DNA of 64,000 bases from Klebsormidium nitens (GCA_000708835.1 DF237064.1:1-64000), one strand, 5' to 3'; shown: positions 7,001-19,945, numbered from the stretch's first letter. Numbers and translations: made by a program. Notes: generated from the sequence alone by a model not told the origin.

Positions 7001-8847
7001 CGATGTTGTGCTATTCAAAGCGGACCGTCCATTATACTTAGTTATCACCTGCCTAAGCTGCGGTAGTGCACAGCTAGGGGTTTGAAAATCCGATGCAGGC
7101 GGCCAGCGAATGCAATGTGCACCCTGCTGTGCACCGTCAATAAATTGACCTCATACCGTCTTCAAATGAGCTTCAACTTATAGCTGGCCGGCGCCGGCTC
7201 TAATCATGTGCTGTAGTCGGCGGCAAACTCCGGGGAGACGCAGATTATTGCACGTGGTTTTCGAAAGCTAGGTTGTATCGGAGTCGTCCATACGTTTTCA
7301 AATCGGGCCTGTCTCACACAAATTGACATCGCTGACCTTAGATCGCGTCGATATGAAACCCCAAGTCACCTGAGAGCAATGCAAGACTGGAGGCAGCACT
7401 TTGCCACGTCTTGGAGAAGGAGAATTGAGATTGGAAGAGGAAGCTGATTAATATCGAGTCTTTGGATACTGGTCCACTGAAAACTCTGAGGCCATTCATG
7501 TCGCCGCAGATTCCACATAGCCTACTTCCAAATATCCATGTTGAGGTGCGGCATTGCGCGAATTACTTCCCAATTACTACCTGCAGTCTAAAAATTTGAG
7601 TAGGTAAGCATCGTGCCGAACTTCTGCGCTGTCTTTGCGTTTTGCGTGAGGATCTAGTTCAGCGGAAGGGAAGACTTCGAGCAGTGGTGAAGAGTCTGGC
7701 TACACTGATCTAGAAGGCTCTTTTGGTGAGAGGAGCGGAAGGCAAAAAACGAAGGAAGAATCAGGTCTGAATACGTCGTGCACAATGACGTCAAACGACG
7801 TACACGTGGCCCGCATGGCGAGCAGCACGTGTCCAGCGGAACCCAAAGCCGCGAGGGGGACGGAAGAGTACCACGGTCTGGGATCCACCCAGTCGCTGGT
7901 CAGGCGGGGGGGTGACATCATTGCGGTGGGTGCCACGTAGAACAATCCATGGCTAGGTGTCTGCATTTGAGGCGTTCATAGCCTAGTGCGGGGCTCCGAC
8001 AGAGATTTTGGGTTGTTCGAAAGCCTGTGATCAGGCGTTTACGTTCGAGCGGAATTCTACTCATAAGGAAGGGGATGCATATAAGTCAGAAAATTGAATT
8101 GCTGCCCACAAGAAACATGGGTGTAAATGCAGAAGAGGTGCTGGTGGTTGTCTTGGCGGGCCGCTAAGAAACTTGTCCATAACAGAAGCCCTTGCTTATA
8201 CAACTCATGAACAGATGTTTGGGCTCTAAACATTTCAGAGATTTCAGTTGACCATCAGGTGCAGAGATGCAGGGACTCGTCATAAGTAGCTGATTCACCG
8301 TCGGGAACGTTTCAAGACCATCAAAGTCTGATTGCCATTAAGAACAACCAACCCACCAGCTCGCTTATCACCGACTTTGGTCGAATGTAGTCAAAGGGCT
8401 CTAGTTTCATGCGTCCCTTAGACAGAATCGAGCAGATTAAGGTCAGTCAGTTGGCACCAGTTGTACCCCTTGAAAACCACTCTTTCTTTAGTGCAAAGTC
8501 GTGCACAATTTCATCTTAGCTTGCATGGTCTTCGGAAGGTTGAATTGAGAATCAGTCATGCTGTGAGAATCCAGTAAAACGAGATTGCCAGCCAAGAGAA
8601 CCGAATCTCTTCCATACGTAGCACCATCTCCTTTGCAGATGTGACAGTGAGTGAATAAGTGCAGATTCAAACGTAGTTACGCTAGCTCGCTGGTTGGTGG
8701 AATCAGAGCGTAAACCAGAAAGCTGTGCAAAGGGACCGGATAGCCGTTCAAAAGCCAGGGCTCGACGAGGGACGCATAACTGACAGGCTGAGTATATGGT
8801 GATGTTCATCCGACAAGCACTGAGCAATGGGCACTTTTTCTCGACAG

Positions 8848-12711: not shown

Positions 12712-15700
12712 TCAGAACGACTTCAACTCATGCAACAAAAGAGGGTCGACTTCGACCTTTTGACTGTCTGTAATCTCGGCGGCGCTGAACGCCCCGGAAT
12801 GACCGCTCGGTAAGCGGCGGGCGCCAGAGCCGCTCGCGGCCGCGCCTCCGTCTGAGCCCGGCTGAGCGGGCGGGGAATCGTTCTGCTTCTTGTCCAGGAT
12901 GATCTGAAACGACAACTTGCCACGTCTAAGAAGTCGAAACGTAAATGAATTTAGCAATAAGACGAGACAACTAGCACGGGGACACGAGACACCGCATTCG
13001 AGCGGACTCCACCAAGTCGAGGACCTAGTACCGCTACGTCGCAAATGCATGCCACAGGAAGGACCTAAGATGTGGATAGGGGAACGACTGGCTCTATTGC
13101 ACACGAAACACCAAATATGACGGGGAGTGACGTGGGGAGGTAACAGCCTACGCCGATAGGAAGAAAAGGGTTGAAACTCGACGAACGAAGCAAAAAGTTG
13201 AGCAGATGTCCGAGGTCTAGGGTCCTGTTGTCCCGGATCAGGAAGCTGTCAGCAACCCACACCCGCCTTCCTTCGGCAATGCAAGTTGAGCAACGAAAAC
13301 CGCAGCGAAGTGTTCTGGGTCCATCAGCTGAACCTTAAGTGCTTGCCGAACAATGAAAGCCAAAGGCTAGGATTGCCCGCCTGATCCCGGGCCCCGCACT
13401 TAACATCAGTCCTTACTCAGACTCTAGGGCTAACGTCAGCAATCCAAAGGCAAACAGAAACGGAAAAGAAGCGAATGTTAAACCTAGTCGCTTTACTTCC
13501 GCTCACCAGGCGGCCGTCCCTGTCAGGTAGAACACGATGCAGTCCCCCGGGGCTAAGTCCAACGGCTGACGTCAGCGACAGAAGGTAGATCAATGCGCCG
13601 AAATCAGCAAATAGAGAGTGGAAAGAGAAACACCGAACCCCGGACGCCTTGCTGTCGCTCACCAGGCGTCCGTCGTTTACCCGATGGCGCCCCCCCGGGG
13701 CTGATTCAAAGTGCTGACGTCAGCAATACCAAAGCCAAAGTTCCGCGCTATAATAACGAAAATCAGCACTCGGAAAAGAAGAGCGGCGAGTCTCAGTGTC
13801 TACCAGGCGACCATTCTCTGCCCGGTAGATAGAGAATAAGTTACCGAGGGCTAAAGCAAAGCGCTGAGATCGGCGAAAGCAAATGCAGATTGGATTTCGA
13901 AAGCAATAAACTTCTCTCGCTTACCAGGCGGCGGTCGTCTGCCCGGTAGAAAGCGAGAAGATCCCCTGGCGCGAGCCCGCGCGATTGGAGGAAGTCGCCC
14001 GCGTGCTCCAGAACGTACATTCGGCTCCTGTTGTTGAGCCAGACGCTGCAAAGAGGATGGGCATTTATGGTCTTCATTCCCGATCGAAATGTATCCCTTT
14101 CGTGGCTGGAAAGAACGTTTCCCGCGTGCTCGAAGACGTACATCCGGCTCCTGTCAAGCCATACGCTGCAAAGAACGAAACGAGCGCTGATTATACTGTG
14201 CTCCAATCCAATGAATCCGTTTTGTGCTCCAATCCAATGACTCCGTTTTGTGTCGACAGCTGGACCCACTATCCGGCACCAAGTGGCTCTGTCGTCTTTC
14301 TCGGGTCGCTAGCTTTCGTGGGTGGACAGAAAGAAGCGATCTTCGCGAACCCCTCGAGCTATTTCAGTCTCCAAGAACCATCTGCTGCGGGAAAACGAGC
14401 AGTCGAGTGGGAATGGTCAAGCTGCAAAAGGAAGGGCCGGGGAAAAACGGTCGAACGCCAACTAACGTCCTGCCCGCATTCCCTTAGCTCGATCCCTGCA
14501 GCTGACAAAACTGATGGAAAAGCCGCTTCTTGGAAACGGCCTTCCTATGTACTGAGCCTCCCCGTGTTTTCATCAGAAGCAGAGCAGACAAACGCAACGG
14601 AAGTGCCGGTTTTGGCAACGGCCTTACCTGTAGCGGAGCTGCCACGTCTTCCCGTCAGCGTCCGTCACTGTCAGGGTGCAGCTCTCCTTGCCGGCCATCC
14701 GAGGCAGATGCCCCTCCGCTTGAACCTGCGGAGATGAAGCCGCTTCAGGGTTGAGAAACCGGTTGCTTGCCCCCTATAACTTCCAAAACTAAACTAGTGT
14801 GCAGGACTTCACAAATTTCCTGCACATATTGGTTCCTTTTTCCCCCGTCCATGAATGATAAGCACTCCCATGTAATTTCACCAGCGGGATGCACGAACCA
14901 TGACGCTGTAAACAGTCTCGTCAGAGGGGGCCAATCGCTTGCTCCTGCTTCCAAGACCGCAAGACCCCATTCCAAGACGGATGACAGTTTCGCAGTTGCT
15001 AAAACGGAAGGGCGACAAACAAGCTCGTTCAAAAACATAAAAGATCTTCTAGCATTTGCAAGACCGGAACAGAAATGAGCGCGACTTCAGACAGTCGCAT
15101 ATCCACACAACCAGAAAAGCGTCCCCTTGCGAAGAAAACAATCCGTTGAGCCGCTGTAACGGCCTTCGCGGCGGTAAGAAGATACGTGCAAGAATAAGGG
15201 CGTCCCACAAAAGGAAGATTGTTGACTGACCTTGGGCATGACGATCCTTCCCAACGGATTGGTGTCGCTTATCGTCAGCGCCTTCTCGAACAGGTACGTG
15301 CAGCCCGGGAGCTCCGCCGTGACCTTCCGCTCCTGCGATTCCGTCCGTTCCATCCGTCCGGCGGAATGCCGCCTCTCACCTCCAAAAGAAGGCCGGAAAT
15401 CGCCGGAAGCATTTCTGGACGGGTTAGGGAAGCTGTTGACAAGCTCTGGGATTGACTGGGGTGAATGGGCACCGACTTGGTGACTAGGGGTTTGACGTTC
15501 TTGACTACTCTGGTTAGCGAAACCCGCCATTGCTGAAGTCAGCTGCTGACTCTCACCCGCAGTTCCTGCGGGCTGGTCAGCGTTAACCGAGGTGATTCCG
15601 GCCTCGATCCCCCAGTGAGAAAGATCTATCGACGGAAAAGATGGGAGAGTGCTCAACGTTCGGCCTCCCGACCCGTCCCAAACCGCTTGGCTGGGAGCGC

Positions 15701-17762
15701 CATTTTCCAGGGGGGTCTGCTTTCCTTCACTGGGGTTCAGAATTTGGACGGGCTCGAGGATCAGCGGGTTGAAGTCAGTAAGCGGCTTTTCACACTCCGT
15801 CAACTCCGAATCGTCGCCGCTTTCGCTTGGAAAGGTCCGACGATTTGGGCTTAAAATGGGGGCGCTAGAAGGGGTGGGGGGGGCGAGGACCGGGGGGAGT
15901 GGGCTAGGCGCTTCTGTGCGCTGCCTCTTAGTGGGGGGGTCCAGGCCCTCTAACAAGGTGCCCCCCGCTTTGAGGAGCGAGCGCTTTTGACGGTACTCCA
16001 TGCAGAGGTCGAACAACTTCCGGACCTGAAGACAAAGCGGAGACACCGTCAGTGCTAGGTTACCCAAAGTAGAAACAAACCTTAGCGTTCGCCCCATCAA
16101 GAAAGGCAACACGCACAACTTGAGCTTTCACCAGTTTCTTTCTTCGAACCTGTCCTTACTCGACCTGTGCCACCGCTTCTAACGCCCACAAAGAGGGGTT
16201 GGCACAAGCTTTAATGCTTCCCCTGACCTCGAACTGTCAACTAGGAGCCTTCTTGTGACGCAAATACAGAGTGGTCTTGACGAATCAAGTCCCGGATCTC
16301 AGCAGAGAATGGACAAGAAAACAACTTTTTTGATTTTCAGCAACAATTCCAGGACGGATGCCTCAGAGCACCGCACCTTCTCCGGCTCGAAGTCCTTCAG
16401 CTTCCTGCGCAGCACTTTCTTCACGTTGTCCACGGCCAGCCCCGTGTCGCCTCGCATCGACGCCTCACTCGCCAGCCCCCCCTCGTTTTGCGACCCCTGG
16501 CTCCCTATGCTGCTCCCGCTACCCCCCCCGAAAGAGAGGGGCCCGTTTACCTGGTAGGGAACATCCACCACAGTCCCAATCACCCCTCCAAAAGGTAACT
16601 GCATTCCCGCCCCAAAGGGAGGCACGAATGCTGCAGGGGGGATCCCTTGAGGCCACTGGCCTGGGGCCGGGGGGTGGAACGGGCCCTGCACTGTTGGGGG
16701 GGGGACAAACGGACCGACAAACGGCTGCCCCATCACAGCCGCCTGCGCGGCAGCGAGGCTTGCGAGCGCCGCTCTACTGAGGGGGGGGTGCGAACCATCT
16801 GTGATCAGCCCCGCCGGTATGCTCCAGGGGGGGTGCGACACGGGGGGCTTGTGTTCCTTCGGCCGGTGGTTCGAGATCCACTTTTTGAGCTGGCGCATCC
16901 CCATGCCGATCAGTTCGCACATCTGCTGTGCCCGAGGATCGTTCTCTAGCCCGGGCGTTGCCCACTTTATGCTCTCCCCGAAGTCGTAGAGCGCTTTCTG
17001 TTGCTGGGGAGTGAAGCGCATACGGGGGCCCGCGAGGGGGTCCTGCATATCCAGGGGGGGCGGGGTCGAGGGCAGCATCGGGCGGCCGATCTTGCGGGAG
17101 CCGGAAGAGGCGGTTTGGCGGGTGCCGGAGGACCGCCGAGAGACGGCACTTTGGAAGGGCGGCCGGGCTGAGAGTGCATAATAGGCTGCATCGCTGCGCT
17201 TCCAAGCCTGCGCCTGTGAGCCAGCATTGGGCGCCTTTCCCATCTTTGCTTCCCATTGCAACTGCTGGTCAGCGCTTGGCGGAGCGAAGTCCGGGGAGCC
17301 ATCTTGCCCACCAATTTCAGAGGCCCACCCGCTCTCCAAACTTCTTTTGCCACCTTCCCCGCTACCCCCCGTACTCTCCCCCTCGATCACGTGAGCAGCC
17401 CCCTCTCCAGTATCCCCAAGAGCTGCGAGCAAGCCCTCATCCGTCCAGTCATTCGACACCCCCGATGCCCCTTCCAGTGGGGCCGCCTGCCCCTCCGCCA
17501 GCCCCCCATCCCAATCAAAGAGCTCTGTGAGTAACTCTAAGCTGGCAAGCCTGGTTAGCTTTCGCTCCTCATGCCCTGGGGGTTTGAAGTTCTCGAAACC
17601 CTCGGATGACAGGAGGTCTGACACGAAATCTAAACTGGCGAGACGATCCAACCCCTTGAACGCCTCCCCCTCCCCACCCCCCTCCAGTTCTGCCAGAACA
17701 TTCTCCCAAGGAATGTTGCTAGGGTTTGGTGCGGGGGCCTGGACGGTACCTTCTGAAGTCAT
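12712..17762 (-). CDS. Transcription factor with ZF-HD-type homeodomain and LAV (ABI3/VAL)-type B3 domain, ~863 aa; exons 17762(17772)-16377, 16025-15231, 14725-14628, 14045-13925, 12903-12712
   Basis: The spliced B3 reads YLFEKALTISDTNPLGRIVMPK|VQAEGHLPRMAGKESCTLTVTDADGKTWQLRYS|VWLNNRSRMYVLEHAGDFLQSRGLAPGDLLAFYRADDRRL|IILDKK. The upstream exon encodes RMRFTPQQQKALYDFGESIKW...QQMCELIGMGMRQLKKWISNHR. An acceptor at 17773 means a further upstream exon may exist. Confidence 0.88.
13495..14175 (-). repeat. Echoes of B3 exon 14045-13925: three donor-side copies (~13800-13840, ~13655-13720, ~13497-13575) and one acceptor-side copy (~14108-14175)
   Basis: CGCCTG|GT is repeated at each donor echo. 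The acceptor echo tttgcag|CGTATGGCTTGACAGGAGCCGGATGTAC lies 120 nt upstream of the real acceptor. Confidence 0.9.
14197..14248. repeat. Near-perfect 26-nt tandem duplication in an intron
   Basis: tgtgctccaatccaatga(a/c)tccgttt occurs twice in tandem. Confidence 0.85.
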
Positions 17763-19390
17763 GCTTTCCAACCTGCGAAAGCAGAGAAGGTGAGCGTCAG
17801 GCTGGGTATGCATCGAAGATGCAATGGCAGGTATGGTGCATCATGAAACGTGATAACCTAAAAGACGCTTGATGCCAATCACAAAATGCTGGACAAGGGC
17901 TGATTAATGGCTACCCTATGTATCGCTGGACGCACTTGCAACAAGTGAAAGCTAGGCACGGCGTAACATGTAATACAAAATTGGACAAGACAGTGTGAGA
18001 AGAAGCATCCGCTTGATAGTGCAGAAGATGTTGCGGATTCAGTAAGTCAGAAGAATTAGCCACTGGCAAAGCAAGCACAGATTCTGTTCGATGATGCACT
18101 GCATAAAATATTTTCAGAATTGTTGAATGGGTGTATGTTTCTCAGTATCTGGTCTACATTCAGAATTCAGAATCGTTTCGGTTATGCAGTCTTACGATAC
18201 GCCGATTATTGTGCTCATCAAGCATGTTCCTTTTCATCATAGGTGGCCAACTTCATTCAAACACTCCACCTAGCAATGCATCAACAGCCTCTAAGAACCA
18301 TGAAACTGGCTCTCTGCAATTGGTGATCGACTTTGTGACAGATGGACCTGCAACCTTTCTTTCAGAACACAACAAGCAGTTCTCCCTTGTCTTTTTTGAA
18401 TGAGTAGGCCCAAATCTGTCAGCAATAGAGCATGTCATCAAAATGCCAGTCGCTACTATGGAAGTTAAGAACACACTCACTTGCAAGGGTCTCTCAACAC
18501 TCGCTGCACGTGGCAGGAACAGGATGTCTGTCAGGCCTCCGCTGAAATCGGTGTCTCCATGGGGTAAGGTTTCAACTTGCAACACCATGTGCTTGCCACC
18601 TTTGCATGTTCACCTCTTCTTTCAGGCAGTGCTCCAATCTACTTTTAATCCATCATGCTCTCACAGCCCTTCTGCAAAGACGTGACATACGCCCCCCTGT
18701 CTTGAGCGAAGCTGGTGAGGCTAAAATAACATGGGACTCCGAAGCGGCCGTCATGATCAGCTACAACAAAGTGCACGACGCCCTAGCTCCCTCCCATTCC
18801 GCTTGCCAACTTGTCCTTTCAACTTGTTCGCCGCCATGTTGCTGCCAAAGCGCCGGTGACGTGTCCATCCATTTGCAAGTGGTTACAATCGCTCATGATG
18901 AGCCTCGCCCGCGTCTCCTCAAGCGCCCCAAGTTCCGAACACATTTTCCACCATGGAAATTCATCGCCAATGACAACTTGCCAGCAAGAGAACAGAGCTC
19001 ATCCGAAAGCCCCAAAAAGAAGAGGCGGCCACTTTTGCAGAGGACAGCCTGCATGTGGTCCGTTTGCGGAGTGCAATTTGCGACGGTGCCTCGACGTGCG
19101 GGTCAGACTTGGCAGGCCGACATCGCGACGCTTGGCGTTTGTTGGGATGAGTCAAACTGTTCGGCCAATCAGAACTTGGCATAAGAATGCGCGATCAGAT
19201 TGCAACAACGACCAGATCTTTCGGGATTGGAGCCGCCTGACATTGCATATGATTGAAGTTTTGCAGCTCACCAAGTTGGAAGTTGCTTACATACTCAAGT
19301 TGCTTCAGGGAGCACGATTCTGCTGCATTCTGCTGCATGCAAATTGCAATGCCAATGGTTTCTTTCCCTTTGAACAATCGGTGCTGATTC

Positions 19391-19736
19391 NNNNNNNNNN
19401 NNNNNNNNNNNNNNNNNNNNNNNNNNNNNNNNNNNNNNNNNNNNNNNNNNNNNNNNNNNNNNNNNNNNNNNNNNNNNNNNNNNNNNNNNNNNNNNNNNNN
19501 NNNNNNNNNNNNNNNNNNNNNNNNNNNNNNNNNNNNNNNNNNNNNNNNNNNNNNNNNNNNNNNNNNNNNNNNNNNNNNNNNNNNNNNNNNNNNNNNNNNN
19601 NNNNNNNNNNNNNNNNNNNNNNNNNNNNNNNNNNNNNNNNNNNNNNNNNNNNNNNNNNNNNNNNNNNNNNNNNNNNNNNNNNNNNNNNNNNNNNNNNNNN
19701 NNNNNNNNNNNNNNNNNNNNNNNNNNNNNNNNNNNN
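19391..19736. other. Assembly gap (346 N)
   Basis: Run of N in the sequence. Confidence 1.
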
Positions 19737-19945
19737 CGGTACACGACACCGATTCCCCGACAGCCTTGCGACGGTGGGTTTCAGGATAATTTCATTTTCA
19801 TTTTTGCCAATAGTTTCAAGTTCTACCGAGGAGGGCTCGAAGTTGGAGAGTGGAGGCGCGCCGGCCAGAGGACTGGCGCCTTTTTCACACTATCATCCTG
19901 TTGGCTTTGCAAGAGACATTCCTAGTAGCATGGTAACATTCTAAG

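Follow-up and report, generated by a model that had tools for sequence, protein, structure and literature searches.

A homeodomain resembling the ZF-HD class joined to a B3 domain in a gene of the alga Klebsormidium nitens

The B3 domain and the homeodomain belong to two central families of plant developmental regulators, and the origin of their architectures in streptophyte algae is under active study. A stretch of 64,000 nucleotides of Klebsormidium nitens DNA (GCA_000708835.1 DF237064.1:1-64000; hereafter the window, i.e., the whole stretch that was analysed) raises a question about both: does the minus strand between positions 12712 and 17762 encode one protein in which a homeodomain of the zinc finger-homeodomain (ZF-HD) type is followed by a B3 domain of the LAV type, or do two neighbouring genes lie here? 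The initial annotation, made from the sequence of the window, had proposed a single gene with a homeodomain-like peptide and a complete B3 domain. We conclude that the homeodomain and the B3 domain very probably belong to one nuclear gene, encoding a transcription factor of about 863 amino acid (aa) residues, and that the fusion is not an annotation artefact. A finger-less homeodomain of ZF-HD type together with a B3 domain of RY type would be an unrecorded architecture for both families, and one older than land plants.

One gene or two

The region forms a five-exon gene, as read from its GT–AG junctions and reading frames; all exon junctions are GT–AG and in frame (Table 1). An exon-by-exon comparison shows that the five translations are 100% identical to the public protein KFL_001150030 (kfl00115_0030; GAQ82542.1; UniProt A0A1Y1HXQ3; 890 aa; labelled P0008 here) within residues 28–890. 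The annotated gene occupies 12712–19338 of DF237064.1, so that window coordinates equal scaffold coordinates, and the exon junction 16377/16025, which the initial annotation had singled out, coincides exactly with the annotated one. The homeodomain exon is part of a 504-aa open reading frame (ORF) at 16299–17813. A second ORF, at 15087–16118, terminates with the first B3 strand, YLFEKALTISDTNPLGRIVMPK, and the rest of the B3 domain is found in three short exons. The exons were searched singly, and the whole-protein steps used the database protein KFL_001150030, which is equal to the spliced product. The single-exon ORFs gave no Pfam match, because no single exon holds enough of the B3 domain to reach a score and because no Pfam model sees this homeodomain.

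The argument for one transcript centres on exon 2. This exon is a single open frame with VRKLFDLCMEYRQKR at its start and the first B3 strand at its end; that is, one frame leads from a motif that splicing attaches to the homeodomain exon into the first strand of the B3 domain. In locus L002, a relative with 51% identity, the counterpart of exon 2 also aligns in one piece without a stop codon, and the same splice, joining the homeodomain exon to VRKLVELCKKYRQ, is part of the annotation of the K. nitens paralogue KFL_008480040. In the AlphaFold2 (AF2) model of the full-length protein, a helical hairpin lies over the exon 1/2 junction (helices 468–482 and 487–509), with a predicted local distance difference test (pLDDT) score of 64–76. 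There is also published work on the gene. According to Tounosu et al. 2023 (PMC10272232), kfl00115_0030 is one of nine K. nitens B3 candidates whose coding sequences are stated to have been amplified from cDNA. The forward primer listed there ends in ATGACTTCAGAAGGTACCGTCCA, the ATG at 17762, and the reverse primer is complementary to the sequence around the stop codon at 12712; the pair spans the gene from the homeodomain exon to the stop codon after the B3 domain.

The alternative is a gene-model artefact, in which a homeodomain gene and a neighbouring B3 gene have been merged by annotation. Separate models do occur among the relatives: KFL_008480040 is annotated as a homeodomain-only protein of 524 aa, and the ORFs called on metagenome and Logan contigs extend no further than exon 1. 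Two further points tell against our reading as well. The annotation of Closterium NIES-68 splits the gene into adjacent homeodomain and B3 models, CLOM_g7920 and g7921, and the success of the full-length cDNA polymerase chain reaction is known as the paper's own statement only (PMC10272232). However, the short models end exactly at a conserved AAG/GT donor, exon 2 bridges both halves in one open frame in the window and in L002, and the cDNA primers were designed, and reportedly used, over the whole coding sequence (PMC10272232). The homeodomain–B3 layout is, moreover, kept in at least eight loci. A merger by annotation is hardly credible, and we retain the single gene.

The start of the protein can be revised. 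Cap analysis of gene expression (CAGE) gives a transcription-start cluster that falls at 18874–19059, provided that kfl00115 and DF237064.1 share coordinates. Since this cluster is downstream of the annotated start at 19338, and since the cDNA forward primer begins at 17762, the ATG at 17762 is more likely to be the start codon than the annotated one. The 27 extra N-terminal residues of GAQ82542.1 are probably not translated, and the upstream exons encoding them are probably 5′ untranslated region.

The homeodomain and the B3 domain

The homeodomain is the peptide RMRFTPQQQKALYDFGESIKW...QLKKWISNHR, encoded on the minus strand at 17024–16863 within the 504-aa ORF. A profile match exists, to TIGR01565 (homeo_ZF_HD), the sole family model matched, with an expectation value (E) of 2.4e-7 over positions 5–57 of 58; the score of 30.6 bits is about half the curated cut-off of 57.45. 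The relatives also score below the cut-off (14.7–37.4 bits). For a 70-aa segment, AF2 predicts three helices, at 18–30, 42–51, and 55–64, the first two of them separated by a long loop (pLDDT 79.5); in the full-length model the block-mean pLDDT over the homeodomain is 89–96. All the matches listed by Foldseek for the homeodomain model are homeodomains, at template-modelling (TM) scores of 0.5–0.7 and a root-mean-square deviation of about 2 Å. By AF2 and Foldseek, then, the segment has the three-helix fold of a homeodomain.

As for its class, a phmmer search of the PDB gives the Arabidopsis ZF-HD homeodomains 1wh5 and 1wh7 as the best full-length matches (E 0.007), ahead of engrailed. Designed tetratricopeptide-repeat proteins ranked at the top of this search were discarded as sums of weak repeat matches of 2–7 bits each. 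A family profile of seven homeodomain sequences (A1), run against the PDB, places 1wh7 first and other homeodomains after it. The E-values differ modestly (0.012 for ZF-HD against 0.19–1 for other homeodomains), and several animal homeodomains have similar Foldseek scores. Such figures would also suit a divergent generic homeodomain, whose likeness to ZF-HD has arisen by convergence or reflects the small number of available models. Against this stands a profile search of 1.84 billion representative proteins, which at a threshold of E ≤ 1e-3 returned 21 proteins. Ten of them are the homeodomain–B3 family and its divergent relatives, and ten others are all of the ZF-HD class: nine exceed the TIGR01565 cut-off, and the tenth has 56.5 bits and a finger. 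Homeodomains of any non-ZF-HD class are absent among the 1.84 billion proteins at this threshold. The best of the outside matches is Raphanus ZHD13 (E 1.4e-9), and the PF04770 finger is present in six of the ten. The remaining match, an SRP54 protein (P0022), is spurious, with 12 profile positions repeated over four stretches.

The details of the sequence point the same way. In standard homeodomain numbering, assigned by reading of the alignment, the spacing from F8 to W48 is 44–45 residues, against the usual 40, which reflects an extended helix 1–2 loop. This loop is shared with the ZF-HD-class protein P0016, as are an F-G-E...W motif ending helix 1, a Cys in helix 2, and an IG-x-G-M-R-x-L motif before helix 3. 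We regard a generic origin of the domain as improbable and assign it to ZF-HD as the nearest class. By the family's own criteria it would still not count as a ZF-HD protein, since its score is below the cut-off and the zinc finger is absent. No match to the finger (PF04770/TIGR01566) is found in any family member (P0004–P0008), and a tblastn search of the 64-kb window with genuine ZF-HD proteins matches the homeodomain alone. The label 'ZF-HD-type' of the initial annotation is thus borne out as to nearest class and fails as to membership, while the lack of a finger that it had noted in the exons extends to the whole protein and the window.

Whether the homeodomain binds DNA is a further matter, on which some of the evidence is unfavourable. 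Apart from the sub-threshold profile scores, there is no match to the Pfam Homeodomain model PF00046 at E ≤ 1 in the exon-1 ORF or in the full-length relatives, and the Closterium relative has a more degenerate homeodomain, in which Ala replaces N51. The module may no longer bind DNA, having become an interaction or dimerisation surface in place of the finger, so that the B3 domain alone would read DNA. ZF-HD proteins normally dimerise through the zinc finger, and the finger is missing here. Conservation speaks against such a loss, as follows. The residues R5, W48, N51, and R53 are present, together with F8 and L16, and R-M-R-F...L...K-K-W-I-S-N-H-R is invariant in seven loci. The 12-residue recognition helix, QLKKWISNHRPK, is invariant in these loci, although the proteins are otherwise about 37% identical, and at the codon level it has eight additional synonymous states and zero amino acid replacements. 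An invariant helix with synonymous changes only is typical of a helix that contacts DNA. Judged by its codons, helix 3 is under purifying selection, and we consider a loss of DNA binding unlikely. Position 50 is Ser in the family alignment.

The assignment of the B3 domain is more direct. It is the sole Pfam family in the full protein (PF02362, residues 735–825) and exceeds the gathering score (Table 1). The best matches among solved structures in the PDB are LEC2 (72.4 bits), FUS3 (72.2 bits), and VAL1 (67.9 bits), and weaker matches are RAV1 (53 bits), TEM1 (43.5 bits), and NGA1 (42.4 bits); no ARF B3 chain is among the PDB matches at E ≤ 0.01. A word-indexed search with the B3 region returned only KFL_001150030 itself, with no land-plant or chlorophyte B3 recovered. 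The alignment with VAL1 is gap-free over 102 residues. In the VAL1–DNA structure, the residues contacting RY bases are S302, I307, R309, V311, W349, N351, N352, and M356 (PMC5934628). Seven of these eight are identical in the K. nitens protein (all except I307), and the equivalent of I307 is Leu, which is the state of LEC2 and FUS3. The equivalent of VAL1 Q345 is Arg, the state of ABI3 (PMC5934628). On these comparisons the B3 domain is of the LAV type, as its earlier description as 'ABI3/VAL-like' had it. Because the base-contact residues are kept, the prediction that it recognises the RY element, TGCATG/CATGCA, as VAL1 does is well founded. Two differences at backbone contacts of VAL1 detract from this prediction: R306 is replaced by Pro, and R347 by Ser. 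No zf-CW or PHD-like domain is present; Pfam gives B3 alone in the three full-length proteins P0006–P0008.

A small and old algal family

The gene is one of four paralogues in K. nitens. Of these, KFL_001150030, KFL_000730220 (1277 aa), and KFL_002190030 (1063 aa) are annotated with both domains. The fourth, KFL_008480040 (locus L001, DF237797.1), has intact unannotated B3 exons 0.8–2.1 kb downstream of its homeodomain-only model, on the same strand (L001 12826–14177); the annotated protein is probably cut short. Assemblies of other Klebsormidium-like organisms (Logan SRR23617307; JGI metagenome 3300060285) contain relatives of two K. nitens paralogues and a further, more divergent member, and the exon order homeodomain, linker, B3 is kept in each of them. 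In total, the order homeodomain–linker–B3 on one strand is seen in L001–L007 and in Closterium (L008). Closterium, a member of the Zygnematophyceae, has the two domains in a single annotated protein, CLOP_g17502 (1611 aa; homeodomain 239–283, B3 1086–1174).

Because the homeodomain-then-B3 order is common to the Klebsormidium paralogues and Closterium, the layout is at least as old as the ancestor shared by Klebsormidiophyceae and Zygnematophyceae, and the proteins are best seen as an old streptophyte-algal family and not as a lineage-specific oddity. The initial annotation had left the choice between 'lineage-specific or ancestral'; the second term fits better and the first can be dropped, given the four K. 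nitens paralogues, the Klebsormidium-like assemblies, and Closterium. The same pair of domains, which it had proposed to look for in other algae, is present in the latter two. The search of 1.84 billion proteins returned no land-plant protein with both domains; its query was the homeodomain only, which makes it weak evidence for absence.

How does the family relate to the LAV proteins? Like the LAV group (ABI3/VP1, FUS3, LEC2, VAL1-3/HSI2), it keeps the RY base-contact residues in a B3 domain closest to LEC2/FUS3/VAL1. Unlike VAL, it has neither zf-CW nor a PHD-like domain, and it has a homeodomain, which we found described for no LAV protein. Proteins with a VAL-type B3 domain and zf-CW occur from chlorophyte algae to angiosperms (PMC6599366), and an ABI3/HSL-like B3 domain is considered ancestral in Viridiplantae (PMC11685440). 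Since the VAL type is already found in chlorophytes and the ABI3/HSL-like form is considered ancestral, it is more probable that the homeodomain–B3 form branched off from LAV in streptophyte algae than that it was the LAV ancestor. The relevance to LAV origins that the initial annotation suggested must be qualified in this sense.

The relation to the ZF-HD/PLINC proteins (Arabidopsis ZHDs, 1wh5, 1wh7) is also mixed. The extended helix 1–2 loop and the class motifs are shared, whereas the N-terminal Cys/His dimerisation finger is lacking and position 50 is Ser. TAPscan v4 dates PLINC to the ancestor of Klebsormidiales and Phragmoplastophyta (PMC11712027), and another study dates it to the base of the streptophytes (PMC7027972); both overlap the age of the homeodomain–B3 family. 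That a homeodomain of this class can occur without a finger, in other architectures, is illustrated by the land-plant proteins P0016 and P0017. These differ from the algal family in having no B3 domain and in homeodomain scores of 98–125 bits, far above the TIGR01565 cut-off. P0016 (from Logan), P0017 (Cornus florida LOC132304501), and P0018 each carry two or three tandem ZF-HD-class homeodomains, three in P0017, without a finger; P0016 also carries an AIPP2 SPOC-like domain. To our knowledge, such tandem finger-less architectures lie outside the usual description of ZF-HD proteins.

A third comparison is with KnRAV (kfl00094_0070), a charophyte RAV-like AP2-B3-PB1 protein of the same species (PMC10272232). 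It, too, joins a streptophyte-algal B3 domain to a second DNA-binding domain, but the partner is AP2, and the B3 is of the RAV type, which binds CCTG and not RY.

A public model of the gene exists, and its coding sequence has already been cloned under the label 'B3 candidate'; the apparent novelty is the recognition of a ZF-HD-like homeodomain in it and in a small ancient algal family. The B3 survey in PMC10272232 used Pfam only, and 'homeo' is absent from its main text. In the open-access papers searched, a homeodomain beside a B3 domain is not mentioned, and full-text searches with the gene, GenBank, and UniProt identifiers gave no paper. Classifiers based on Pfam domain rules would assign these proteins to the ordinary ABI3/VP1-type B3 factors and miss the homeodomain, which may affect reconstructions of when PLINC and LAV arose.

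Proposed function and neighbouring features

In the AF2 model, the protein consists of two domains predicted with confidence, a helical hairpin, two N-terminal amphipathic motifs, and long disordered linkers. A look-up of its N-terminal 520 residues in the ESM Atlas gave no usable feature match, with structural rows at TM < 0.2 only. We infer DNA binding by both domains, and the following mode of action is proposed. The B3 domain would dock on RY elements, as predicted from the kept contacts. The homeodomain, as a monomer, would add a second short site, probably with an ATTA-like core; ZF-HD proteins read such a core, and R5, W48, N51, R53, and the invariant recognition helix suggest that the same may hold here. 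The flexible linker of about 400 residues between the two domains would allow variable spacing of the sites, so that the protein might select composite or paired sites.

A regulatory context is offered by the auxin response. Tounosu et al. 2023 (PMC10272232) report that K. nitens promoters induced by indole-3-acetic acid (IAA) are enriched for the RY motif, and leave the RY-binding protein unidentified. The CAGE cluster kfl00115_18874_19059_-, bracketed there as being after the predicted start codon, rises from 0 to 30.9 counts per million with IAA (P 0.0024); with cycloheximide, its rise is not significant (PMC10272232). From these two observations, RY enrichment in IAA-responsive promoters and a start cluster that IAA induces without cycloheximide and not significantly with it, one may speculate that the gene is a candidate secondary-response RY factor, and the family offers a concrete candidate for the RY-binding protein of Klebsormidium. 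A result that counts against the proposal comes from the same source: in an unreplicated transient assay of K. nitens B3 proteins, KnRAV alone strongly activated the KnLBD1 promoter, the only promoter tested (PMC10272232). It is tempting to go further and to propose that the family is the RY-binding factor sought in Klebsormidium, acting in the secondary, protein-synthesis-dependent auxin response; that it is an ancient two-headed regulator lost or dismantled in embryophytes; and that its homeodomain is a sister or source lineage of PLINC. We hold this extended scenario to be doubtful.

In the window, the RY core TGCATG occurs 64 times against 39.7 expected, and none of 100 shuffles reaches 64. 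These counts give no ground for proposing autoregulation through RY: the copies near the start cluster, at 18603, 19050, and 19334/19336, cannot be told apart from the window-wide excess.

The coordinates of the gene and its features are collected in Table 1.

Table 1. Features of the homeodomain–B3 gene and its surroundings in the window (DF237064.1).
Feature	Position	Strand	Remarks
Coding exon 1, 462 aa	16377–17762	-	From the ATG used for cDNA cloning; N-terminal motifs, homeodomain, Pro-rich linker; 100% identical to GAQ82542.1 residues 28–489
Coding exon 2, 265 aa	15231–16025	-	From a conserved VRKL motif to the first B3 strand and N-arm (YLFEKALTISDTNPLGRIVMPK); single open frame; 100% identical to residues 490–754
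Coding exon 3, middle of B3	14628–14725	-	Two bases carried over; 100% identical to residues 755–786; conserved in L001–L006
Coding exon 4, B3 C-arm WLNNRSRMYVLE and following strands	13925–14045	-	100% identical to residues 788–827; equivalents of VAL1 W349, N351, N352, M356 kept
Coding exon 5, B3 end, C-terminal tail, stop codon	12712–12903	-	100% identical to residues 828–890
B3 domain, LAV-type by comparison, residues 731–835 of KFL_001150030	12880–15302	-	Split over four exons; Pfam B3 41.2 bits, cut-off 30.1; AF2 pLDDT 83–94
ZF-HD-like homeodomain, residues 274–329	16857–17024	-	TIGR01565 30.6 bits; no zinc finger
Two conserved amphipathic motifs, GLDRLASLDFVSDLL and RKLTRLASLELLTELF (RLASLD/ELL..L)	17514–17654	-	Conserved block across paralogues; short helices of low confidence in AF2
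Conserved helical hairpin motif, KKVLRRKLKDFEPEK and VRKLFDLCMEYRQKR, across exon 1/2 junction	15957–16448	-	Range includes intron 16376–16026; conserved block
Two annotated upstream exons	19338–19291 and 18503–18480 (span 18480–19338)	-	Source of the 27 extra N-terminal residues of GAQ82542.1
CAGE transcription-start cluster, IAA-induced	18874–19059	-	PMC10272232, supplementary data 1
Degenerate tandem array, period about 120–156 nt	13426–14174	-	Exon 4 of B3 is one unit

The ORFs flanking the gene, upstream and downstream, gave no informative Pfam matches, and no sign of a mobile element was seen in them. A plus-strand ORF of 377 aa at 18811–19944, without a Pfam match, is divergent from the region of the start cluster, and it may share a bidirectional promoter with the gene.

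At the locus of the paralogue KFL_008480040, the linker region (12066–12826 of L001) has frame breaks or unrecognised introns. Adjoining this paralogue, at L001 3901–8175, is a gene of 1125 aa with Prim-Pol and D5_N domains, which probably belongs to a primase-helicase transposon family.

The tandem array around exon 4 contains an upstream copy, at 14165–14046, that is an in-frame repeat of the acceptor and the first half of the exon. This copy keeps its AG acceptor, and its use would add 40 in-frame residues repeating the WL..RSRMYV.EHAG strand; a read-through ORF at 13841–14269 holds both copies. In Closterium sp. NIES-67 (BQMB01000274.1, L008), tblastn shows the middle B3 exon piece duplicated, at 7479–7640 and 7807–7893. 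Partial copies of the start of exon 4 are also found in the homologous introns of L003 (13807–13860) and L004 (7084–7523; four copies).

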